This document shows positions 1,468 through 52,649 of a stretch of 64,000 nt of DNA, one piece after another. The stretch is from the NCBI GenBank assembly GCA_965637545.1, contig OZ281501.1:1054001-1118000 (forward strand), written 5' to 3'. The position numbers and the translations under genes are program-made. The notes beneath the pieces were generated by a model that saw only the letters and a program-made list of their open reading frames with translations, did not search any database and was not told the DNA's origin. Source of the DNA: Phallusia mammillata (Eukaryota). Numbering within the stretch: position 1 is the first letter of the stretch; each line of letters starts with the position of its first letter.

Positions 1468-4400
1468 ATGCCGCTTCGAAGTCCAATGCCTGATTTAGTA
1501 ATTCCTAATGTCAGTTTTGGTGATTATATGTTTTCGAATCTCGCTAGAAGCAAAAACAAGGTTACTGTGGTAAGTTACTACTTTTTTCTCAAACCCTGGG
1601 ATAAAAACATGATTGGTTTATCAATCTTTGTTTTTTGTATGTGAAGCGTTTGTTGACCAGTTTCGTTCTTGACGTGTGTTTTCCATGTTATCTCAGATTG
1701 ACAGTTCAAACAATGACAACCAGTACACGTCCCAGGAAGTACGTGAGAACTCCATGAAATGTGGGAGCGCATTTTACCGCATGGGGTTGATGAAGGGTGA
1801 TGTGGTGGCAACTTGTCTCACAAACTGTGCCGAATACACATTCATAGTGATGGGAGTGAATGCATGCGGTGGAATACTTACTACGTCAAACCCAAACTAC
1901 ACCAAAGGTTGGATTAAAGCTTCCCAATTCAATTTATAGTGAAGTTGTTTGTTTATAGCTGAATCAGACTTGTAAGTCTGGCCTGGTTTGGGCTTGAGTT
2001 TATTTGATGGGCCCCCACTTTAAATTCGCTGTCCGTACTCTTTTGAAGGTATAAATTGCTAGTTGTTGGTTTTGAAGGTATAAACTAAGTAGCTAGTTGT
2101 TGGTTTAAACCTTATGTTCGACATTTGTTTCGGTCATTGGCTACTGTTAATGTCCTCTTTATTATGGTCCAGTCAATTAAACTTCCGGACCCAAACGGGC
2201 TTTCTAAATACTGTTCAGGGCGTATACTTTCGGGCTCGAATATCATTACACCCATATTTGTGAACTTATCAGTTATTTGACGTTGATAAATATATCACAA
2301 CAACGTATTCATTGATTGGGTTTCAAATTCAAACTTTTCCCTCGCGTATCTAAAATCAAAAGCTACGAAGTAGGCTAACATGTTCTATTTTTAGATGAAC
2401 TTTCATTCCAGTTCAAACAATCCGAACCTAAATTTGTTTTCTGCAATTCTGAGAACTACGTAAAAGTACAAGAAGTTTGTTCAGAACTAAATTCTGTTAA
2501 GGTAAGTTACCATTATACTTTGTTTTATACTAGTAATAACAGAGTACACATTATGTCACTTTGGCAGGAAATATTTAACATGGAAGAACAAACAAATCGA
2601 AAAACATTTTCCCAATTTCTTGCCAAGGGAAATTCCAAAGGTTAGACATTATATCACATACACTTGCATTGATTTGTAAAATATATAAGATTCAATTTAT
2701 TTATCAGACTTTCCTCTTGGCGTTTCTGTCGACCCGGACGATGTGGCTTTAATTCTCTACTCTAGCGGAACCACTGGGCTTCCTAAGGGTGTCATGCTTA
2801 CACACAGAAACTTGGTTTCAATTTTTACCGAATGCGAGTAGGTTGACTTGAAAAAAACTTATAAAATCCTAAACAAATGTATATATCCGCACTAGTTTCT
2901 GCTTGGCTCATGCTAACCTCTATTCTTGTAAAAAGTGGACATAGCTTTTGCCGTTCGAAAGCGTTACATTTCATTTGCATGTCAGACAACACAGTACTTT
3001 TTTCTTGTTTAAAACCTGAACATAAATTTAGGACTAGGATCAGCCTTAAGTTGTTTATCCAAACCTAGGTCGGGTTGTGTGTTTAAATCCCACCGCAGGT
3101 AACATTTTCTCTAGCCTACGTGTGTTAAACTCATGCTTCGTCGCGATTTGAAATAATAAATTTACCCTTTCAGGTGCGCGTTTCGACTTTCTCGTCTGGA
3201 TATCGTCTACCTGGTTCTTCCCATGTTCCACATCTACGGTATTATGATGTCACTTTTGGTGATGTCGCAAGGAGCCAAAGTTGTTCTGAAGAAACGATTC
3301 GACTTCATGCAAATGTTGCGAGACATTCAGAAATACAAGGTTTGCAACCTGACCTTTTATATGTAAGCTGCAGACAGTACGCAATGATCCGACTAACAAG
3401 GTCTGATCATAGCAGTTTGTGATGAGACACTGTCCGCATTGGCTAGTGTGGCCACTTCGACGCAATGAGACCTTTATAGGTCGAACCATGGTGTACTCTC
3501 TGCGGCTTGCTTGTGATGTAAAAGATTGATATTTTCATACTCCCTGATAAATGTATTGTTGATATATTTCCACGCATAGATCACCACTTTTACTGCTGCG
3601 CCACCCATTATAGTGGGCATGGACCAACTTCCACCAAATCATGGTTTTGATATTTCATCTTTAAGAGAACTTGGCTCTGGTGCTGCTCCTCTGGCTGAAA
3701 GTGTGGCGCTCTCTGTTTCCAAGAAACTTAACGTCAACATAAAACAAGGTGATTTCAATTATAGGTTTGTTCACTAGGAAGCTGGTCTTCATTTGAGGCA
3801 TAGGAAAATATACACAACTTATTTACAACAATCTACATATGCATCAACAATAACTGCATCAGACAAACCACATGGATTACCTTTCGTTTTTCGTATTACA
3901 ATTAAATCACTAAATTTTGCAGGACGTGTTTTTTTTCACCATTAAGTTTCATTTTTGGTGTAATGAGTCTGGTTCTTTGTAAATTATCATGTGTCGTTAT
4001 ATAGTTTGGGGCTTGACAGAGGGAGCACCTGGAACGCTACACATGGACGTTTACACTCCTGTACTTTCGGTTGGAAGCGTCGCACCAAACACTTTGTTGA
4101 AGGTAAAGTGTACTTTAGTTGATTCAAACCCATGCCTGATGCATTTCTTTCCCTCAAAGCACAGGCGCGGGTTCGAATCTCACTTGAGACTTTTGTCATT
4201 CTATTGCTCATGCACTTTGTGTAATTCGTTGTTCGCTGACCTCTACTTTAGCAGCAGATCCGGTACACGGCGAAATGTGCCTAACCCTTTTGTGCGTTGT
4301 CAGATTATTGATACAAACAGTGGAAGGGAACTAGGCCCTAATGAAGACGGTGAAATTTGCATTAAAGGCCCACAGGTAAACTGCACACAATCTCTTAAGT

Positions 4401-52649: not shown

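Follow-up and report, generated by a model that had tools for sequence, protein, structure and literature searches.

What does a row of genes resembling plant 4-coumarate-CoA ligase (4CL) and firefly luciferase do in the genome of an ascidian, and how did it come to be there? The question is raised by a 64,000-nucleotide stretch of Phallusia mammillata DNA (assembly GCA_965637545.1, contig OZ281501.1, here C8, positions 1054001-1118000 of the forward strand), hereafter called the window; positions upstream of it are given as negative window coordinates. The answer that we consider likely, judging from the sequence, is that these genes form a tandem array of peroxisome-derived acyl-CoA ligases, belonging to the ANL clade of 4CL, luciferases and peroxisomal acyl-CoA synthetases (ACS), with diversified substrate pockets. 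The array itself was shaped by duplication, decay and gene conversion.

An initial annotation of the window had described nine luciferase/4CL-like paralogs between 1468 and 52649, with a common 12-exon structure and common intron phases, five of them with open frames. A six-frame fragment scan of the window returned the ANL core motif sets SSGTTGxPKG, GWLHTGD and GKILRR repeatedly on both strands, and motif scans together with tblastn searches using the exons of the first copy gave nine colinear ANL paralogs (c1 to c9). Gene models were built with our own spliced protein-to-DNA aligner, which handles introns of the three phases, frameshifts and stops and accepts GT donors only; the reference was the Ciona protein P0014 at first and then the closest open paralog. 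Spliced alignment agreed with the claimed structure for every copy: all nine have 12 exons, with intron phases 0,1,0,1,2,0,1,0,0,0,1 and near-constant exon lengths (102, 211, 107, 73, 130, 166 (169 in c7 and c8), 169, 98, 72, 156 and 163, the last exon being variable). The count of open frames had to be raised to six, since coding sequences rebuilt from the coordinates gave a complete frame with one terminal stop for c1, c3, c4, c7, c8 and c9, the last by way of a GC donor in intron 3 (GCAAGT at 42263; GTAAGT at the c1 counterpart). The remaining three copies, c2, c5 and c6, are broken.

1468-5003, + strand: c1, 12 exons, complete 524-aa frame ending in -SKY, all donors GT (spliced alignment, Pfam on exons)
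1468-1569, 1697-1907, 2395-2501, 2568-2640, 2708-2837, 3174-3339, 3580-3748, 4005-4102, 4304-4375, 4437-4592, 4655-4817, 4876-5003, + strand: exons of c1
7608-11030, + strand: c2, pseudogene
12162-15130, - strand: c3, 12 exons, complete 527-aa frame ending in -SKY, with a 99% identical twin (u2) upstream of the window
16513-20346, - strand: c4, 12 exons, complete 526-aa frame ending in -SKY
20974-24300, - strand: c5, pseudogene
25093-28525, - strand: c6, broken as assembled
30779-34818, - strand: c7, divergent subfamily, complete 521-aa frame ending in -EKK, exon 6 one codon longer
35792-39802, - strand: c8, divergent subfamily, complete 521-aa frame ending in -EKK
41005-52649, + strand: c9, basal member in the tree, 528-aa frame if the GC donor is used, ending in -SKM, long introns

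The nine copies between 1468 and 52649 are thus real, but 1468 is not where the array begins. In the 90 kb fetched upstream of the window, tblastn and the aligner located five further full-length copies (u1 to u5) and two fragments (u3b and u4b), all within about 30 kb of the window, the first copy, u1, starting at -29763. Copies u2, u3 and u5 are full-length and open, u5 once a GC donor is allowed in intron 4, and u1 and u4 are full-length and broken. The apparent frameshifts of c9 and u5 were rejected, both being GC-AG introns missed by the GT-only aligner, and the odd exon 5/6 borders of u2 and u4 disappeared with a closer reference. No ANL-like sequence was found in the 10 kb beyond the end of the window. 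The whole array comprises at least 14 full-length copies over about 82 kb, nine open and five broken, and four fragments; the window covers the right-hand two thirds of it. The window is AT-rich (GC 0.34-0.47), its long bacterial-type open reading frames amount to a single exception of 1364 aa, and an Rfam scan at gathering thresholds and a tRNA scan, both of the whole window, came back empty; minimal hammerhead ribozymes may score too low for the Rfam thresholds.

The gene models agree with assembled contigs of four runs from one study, which hold 6-9% of the sequence words of 12100-20400. Of the 11 introns predicted for c4, nine (introns 11 to 3) appear as spliced joints in the contigs on 14401-20400, namely at 16646/16707, 16869/16934, 17089/17150, 17221/17466, 17563/17798, about 17966/18145, about 18310/18493, 18622/18709 and 18781/18848, with CT..AC ends on the + strand. 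Because these contigs lack the introns, they are of RNA origin. Depth is low for the low-mismatch contigs over c4 exons 11 and 12. At the level of the family, transcription and splicing thus follow the gene models. At 15945-16073, a piece of about 125 nt bounded by TTTTTTTAAGG ... CCTTAAAAAAA reaches a summed depth of up to about 4200 from RNA-run contigs, which run into unrelated sequence on both sides; within the 154 kb examined, the segmental duplicate holds the only other occurrence. The piece resembles a small dispersed inverted-repeat element that is present in many transcripts.

Which enzymes do these genes encode? Database, family and structure searches were run exon by exon, and spliced proteins were compared only within our scripts. 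Above curated cut-offs, PF00501 (AMP-binding) was found on exons 2, 5, 6 and 9 of c1 and PF13193 (AMP-binding_C) on its exon 11; PF00501 was also found on exons of c3, c8 and c9. The best solved matches of exon 10 were plant 4-coumarate-CoA ligases and beetle luciferases (E 1e-22 to 1e-17), followed at lower scores by Drosophila CG6178 and bacterial fatty-acyl-CoA synthetases, and exon 6 aligned best with residues 226-274 of tobacco 4CL2 (Nt4CL2). The nearest named proteins were Ciona intestinalis '4-coumarate--CoA ligase 1-like' (XP_002127963) and P. mammillata A0A6F9D6G5. Pfam domains, solved relatives and these named Ciona proteins agree with the luciferase/4CL-like assignment made initially, and the matches in the Protein Data Bank (PDB), the named homologs and a tree position inside the animal 4CL-like clade place the array in the 4CL/luciferase/peroxisomal ACS clade. 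An exhaustive search of representative sequences with c1 exon 2 gave no full-length relative above 45% identity on exon 2 and no fragment above 53%, its output being for the most part fragmentary hits and false leads rich in repeats. A word search with the same exon, aimed at short fragments, came back empty, a result weakened by its length window.

Catalytic motifs point to acyl-CoA ligation as the most likely predicted activity. Every open copy keeps the A3 P-loop ([ST]SG[ST]TGxPK[GA]), the Asp of the A7 TGD motif and the A10 Lys (GK); in c7 the TGD motif reads TED with the Asp kept, and c2 has a stop in it. By analogy with the family, a carboxylic acid and ATP would first be converted to acyl-AMP by means of the P-loop, the TGD Asp and the A10 Lys, after which the C-terminal domain would rotate and CoA would take the acyl group via the A8 loop. 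This loop (DRxKxLIKYKG[FY]Q) is intact in c1, c3, c4, c9, u2, u3 and u5. The copies would then amount to a panel of ligases with a shared catalytic scaffold and different pockets, possibly acting on different carboxylic acids, be they fatty, dietary, xenobiotic or specialised.

The C-termini bear on where such enzymes would work. The core copies carry a C-terminal SKY, whose last residue is non-canonical; c9 ends in SKM, c7 and c8 in EKK, which is no type 1 peroxisomal targeting signal (PTS1), and the out-paralogs in SKL, AKL or NKL. As out-paralogs end in SKL or AKL, a peroxisomal ancestry of the array is likely; from such an ancestor c9 would have kept its SKM, the core copies would have drifted to SKY, and c7 and c8 would have lost the signal along with both A8 lysines. 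Present peroxisomal targeting of the copies is uncertain.

The two divergent copies, c7 and c8, depart furthest from this scheme, and it is possible, although we hold it with some doubt, that they are not CoA ligases at all and have a new cytosolic function, with adenylation only or with another acyl acceptor. Instead of the usual KYKGFQ their A8 loops read ISYGKL (c7) and TYYGSQ (c8), without either A8 lysine, whereas every other aligned tunicate, amphioxus and Trichoplax homolog has K[YV]KG[FL]Q. GAAPL is changed to GSERL in c7 and to GGEPL in c8, both proteins end in -EKK, and they sit on a long stem branch (1.1 on exons 6-8), with both frames open and a ratio of nonsynonymous to synonymous divergence (dN/dS) of 0.29 between them. 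The same loss of residues could equally mark a decaying activity. In c7 and c8 the second half-reaction may be changed, or the two copies may be decaying.

How have the copies stayed alike in some parts and become different in others? Whole-gene dN/dS between open copies is 0.17-0.29 (Nei-Gojobori), which indicates that they are under purifying selection. Within one pair, dS is highly uneven from exon to exon, from 0.1-0.2 in exons 2, 9 and 10 to about 1.1 in exons 4, 6 and 7. Between c1 and c3 it is 0.15 in exon 2, 0.14-0.19 in exons 9-10 and about 1.1 in exons 4 and 6, and between c1 and u3 it goes from 0 in exons 1-2 to 0.45 in exons 6-8. Introns follow the same pattern: c1 and c4 share their intron 3 letter for letter (100% identity), and among c1, c3 and c4 the identity of introns 9 and 10 is 78-95%, while introns 5-8 of the same pairs are at background (about 30-59%). 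Uneven dS together with intron identity points to conversion or recombination among the copies as the cause rather than to constraint on codons. Per-exon dS and per-intron identity, introns included, thus show the mosaic similarity of concerted evolution: conversion homogenises the 5' exons (2-5) and the 3' exons (9-11) together with their small introns.

Central exons 6-8, which encode the stretch forming the acyl pocket in 4CL and luciferase structures, remain divergent (dN 0.16-0.31 between open core copies), and the copies vary in the residues that follow FHIYG and the TE motif. The initial annotation had proposed that the expansion serves to activate diverse carboxylic acids. Divergent pocket exons make this a reasonable reading, but dN/dS is 0.2-0.5 in exons 6-8 and exceeds 0.5 in no exon, so that none comes above 1.

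An alternative is that the copies are redundant, either as a dosage amplification or as neutral copy-number churn of one fatty acyl-CoA synthetase, with exons 6-8 drifting beyond the reach of conversion. The dN/dS values just given fit this, those of exons 6-8 resembling ordinary purifying selection; five of the 14 copies are broken, and the family has also grown in tandem in Clavelina. We nevertheless regard redundancy as unlikely, because the amino acid divergence of exons 6-8 between open core copies falls on positions lining the acyl pocket in 4CL, and because nine copies keep open frames under constraint.

Is the array particular to this lineage? Trees were quick maximum-likelihood runs with SH-aLRT support. 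With full-length sequences the 14 array copies form one clade (SH-aLRT 95), in which c9 is basal, followed by u5 with c7/c8 and then by the ten core copies; its sister clade (97) holds a single-copy gene of P. mammillata, three Clavelina genes and Ciona genes. Since conversion can fake monophyly, a tree was also run on exons 6-8 only, and it kept the array clade (90, and 96 without c9). An approximately unbiased (AU) test against the grouping of the array with the single-copy Phallusia gene gave p 0.02, for a group named after seeing the tree. Array monophyly and the AU result suggest that the founder may predate the split from Ciona and Clavelina, without a counterpart sampled there. Among the sampled species, the lineage-specific expansion proposed initially is upheld, as the array copies group together to the exclusion of the genes from Ciona, Clavelina and Styela, also on the least-converted exons.

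Exon structure, in contrast to tree position, does not set the array apart. The same 12 exons and phases are found in the single-copy Ciona gene, the Clavelina genes and the single-copy Phallusia paralog, so the structure is ancestral and no mark of the array. This Phallusia paralog, A0A6F9D6G5 (automatically named 'Luciferin 4-monooxygenase'), is 39-53% identical to the array copies and its gene lies at C8:14791150-14799284 (98.5% identity, which also establishes the species), 13.7 Mb from the array, with no ANL neighbour in its own 10-kb stretch; it shares the 12 exons, phases and catalytic motifs with the array and differs in its canonical AKL end and its place in the sister clade. Ciona XP_002127963 likewise resembles the array in identity (46-53%), in its 12 exons and phases and in its catalytic motifs, and is unlike it in ending in SKL and falling in the sister clade. 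No ANL gene was found within 10 kb on either side of the Ciona gene, whose neighbours are an aldehyde dehydrogenase and a ZP-domain gene. Another parallel is a tandem group in Clavelina lepadiformis (LOC143468259, LOC143469450 and a third gene), which resembles the array in family, tandem arrangement and exon structure; unlike the array, it comprises only three genes, falls in the sister clade and has a helix-loop-helix (HLH) gene rather than CSRNP within 10 kb. As Clavelina has its own three-gene tandem group in a sister lineage, tandem growth of this family recurs in ascidians. No publication on 4CL-like arrays of ascidians turned up in our literature searches, and the 4CL-like family goes unmentioned in a comparative paper on tunicate genomes.

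Elsewhere in the P. mammillata genome, further 4CL-like loci lie on C6 (about 15.42-15.45 Mb), C5, C4 and C2, with several 4CL-like copies within 24 kb at C6:15422506-15446584. At C1:29322487-29344709, four intronless AMP-binding genes of 513-556 aa, about 32% identical to the Phallusia 4CL-like protein, form a 22-kb cluster, which is a separate expansion of a single-exon ANL family.

The array itself keeps traces of how it grew and shrank. Among its copies dS spans 0.012 to saturation, and broken copies carry distinct lesions. In c2 these are GGA>TGA at 10523 (the Gly of the TGD motif), a change of the intron-8 acceptor from AG to AT and a tail frameshift at 11002; c5 is missing 1 nt of exon 2 (about 23800), and its intron-9 acceptor is changed from AG to TG; c6 has one 1-nt deletion in exon 8 (about 26066). 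A supposed 10-nt deletion in exon 10 of c5 was rejected, as it is actually the lost acceptor. Outside the gene models, tblastn confirmed the relics of further copies that had been reported initially, and c9 carries an insertion:

5611-5860, + strand: 3' relic of a further copy, end of exon 11 and exon 12, residues about 449-527, last 79 codons
11139-11237, - strand: remnant of exon 1 from another copy, 33 residues with 85% identity to exon 1 of c4
45560-50235, + strand (sense): long terminal repeat (LTR) retrotransposon in c9 intron 8, LTRs at 45560-45784 and 50011-50235, 99% alike

In the 3' relic the sequence is contiguous, without intron 11 (about 60-70 nt), its frames are shifted and its homology runs on into the downstream flank; 5588-6225 matches the c3 3' end and flank at 69% alignment identity. 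It could stem either from precise intron loss or from a piece of a processed copy. The retrotransposon, with LTRs of 225 nt and a target duplication ATTAC, sits 19 nt past the donor of an intron 8 that was originally about 60 nt long. Its open 1364-aa frame (45830-49924) reads from gag (SCAN-like, CCHC) through integrase (516-704 of the frame) and reverse transcriptase (991-1148) to RNase H, the gag part matching the SCAN domain model, and the element is apparently young and complete. Integrase before reverse transcriptase is the order known from Gmr1-like Ty3/gypsy elements.

Self-comparison of the array revealed duplicated blocks. The stretch from -30156 to -21689 matches 7215 to 15682 at 99.0% identity over 8,469 nt, so u1 and u2 are a copy of c2 and c3; a second match, of -10450 to -8400 with 15162 to 17215, is about 2 kb long at 98.5%, and the 5' half of u3 is 93% identical to that of c1. 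The tail frameshift is common to c2 and u1, and each twin also has private lesions, the c2 stop and acceptor loss being missing from u1 and the u1 exon-4 frameshift from c2. The array has thus evolved by duplicating segments again and again, by losing some copies to decay and by gene conversion. The initial description of a birth-and-death cluster holds as far as it goes: paralogs are of mixed age, open and broken copies stand beside relics and fragments, the clustering is species-specific, and there are the 99% identical 8.5-kb duplicate and the retrotransposon insertion. On its own it is incomplete, given the strong gene conversion.

Several points weigh against the reading of a diversified, lineage-specific and expressed array of ligases. 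The expression data are contigs whose RNA label is only guessed. Several of them carry 2-9 mismatches per exon, and a c4-like exon 3 is joined to a c3-like exon 2, which indicates that several stem from paralogs or alleles and not from c4. The deepest spliced contig (577 nt, depth 615, at 18510) crosses the exon 5/6 junction reading ...IFTECSCALR and has no exact counterpart among the 14 copies; its source could be another individual's allele or a copy missing from the assembly. An old array can take on a species-specific look through concerted evolution, and the closest relatives, Ascidia, Ascidiella and P. fumigata, are outside the species compared. With no exon at a dN/dS above 1, adaptive pocket diversification is not established, and the mosaic could merely mark where conversion tracts fall.

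Finally, the 99% identical block could be an uncollapsed haplotype instead of a true duplication. Part of the copy number would then be an assembly artefact, u1 with u2 and u4b being the other haplotype of c2 with c3 and of the c4 3' end, placed in tandem. Identities of 98.5-99.0% are within the allelic range for a highly polymorphic ascidian, they extend over 8.5 and 2 kb with intergenic DNA included, and the two blocks meet at overlapping coordinates (15162-15682). We consider this improbable, as the blocks are 37 kb apart with the different copies u3, u4, u5 and c1 between them; moreover, the nine copies in the window are mutually distinct (dS at least 0.2), so that the observation of nine copies is independent of the block.

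A bolder version of pocket diversification would have the array maintained by selection as a substrate panel, in which conversion keeps the scaffold uniform while the pocket cassette of exons 6-8 is kept different. In it c7 and c8 would be cytosolic with new chemistry (adenylation only or a non-CoA acceptor), and the array would form a specialised small-molecule locus with a sulfotransferase whose exon (PF00685, E 9e-9) lies at C8:1018599-1019075 on the - strand, about 5 kb before u1. We give this version only a slim chance.

To our knowledge, luminescence has not been reported in Phallusia mammillata, which weighs against the notion that one or more copies are luciferases or handle luciferin, as in beetles, Arachnocampa and the firefly squid. 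Most animal members of the clade are plain acyl-CoA synthetases, the pocket exon is nearer to 4CL than to luciferases, and no paper was found tying ascidian 4CL-like genes to light. Nothing in the sequence speaks for the luciferin suggested initially. Although the array shares its superfamily clade with beetle luciferases, the light enzymes of squid and glow-worm belong to the same superfamily (PMC4899746, PMC5818473), and a sulfotransferase is among the beetle luciferin-related enzymes (PMC10798137) just as a sulfotransferase exon lies 5 kb from the array, we hold a role in light production to be exceedingly improbable.

The array is better compared with known systems as a likely set of acyl-CoA ligases with diversified pockets. 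In elateroid beetles, tandem PACS/ACS gene arrays gave rise to luciferases (PMC10798137), and the Phallusia array resembles them in enzyme clade, in tandem duplication on one chromosome, in expansion and contraction and in a PTS1-bearing ancestry (PMC10798137). It is unlike them in that its host is a chordate and that no copy is known or expected to emit light; it also differs in its documented conversion with a protected central region and in a C-terminal signal that drifted to SKY or was lost. Among solved structures, those of plant 4CL (Nt4CL2, PDB 5BSM; Populus 4CL, 3A9U) match exon 10 and pocket exon 6 best, and the FHIY of the pocket helix is conserved, whereas the residues after FHIY and TE differ and vary between copies, and the animal has no phenylpropanoid pathway context. 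The name '4CL-like' says nothing about substrate.

Tandem expansion of 4CL/luciferase-like ligases was already known from beetles, where it was the raw material for luciferases. Our analysis adds a clear chordate example, with at least 14 copies that are still being duplicated, broken and converted; it is an ascidian equivalent of the beetle ACS/PACS arrays. Duplication, decay and partial overwriting by neighbours are an ordinary growth route for such families, and the array opens no long-standing question; it is a gene-family description at the level of sequence. Its copies make up a small natural collection of pocket variants built on a single scaffold, and c7 and c8 are a natural pair bearing on the fate of an ANL enzyme after loss of its CoA-ligation residues.

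On the right-hand side, c9 is directly followed by a CSRNP gene (PF16019; exons 54928-58520, + strand), the only CSRNP gene in the genome. A 300-aa open reading frame at 53717-54619, with no Pfam match, may be an upstream CSRNP exon or unrelated to it.

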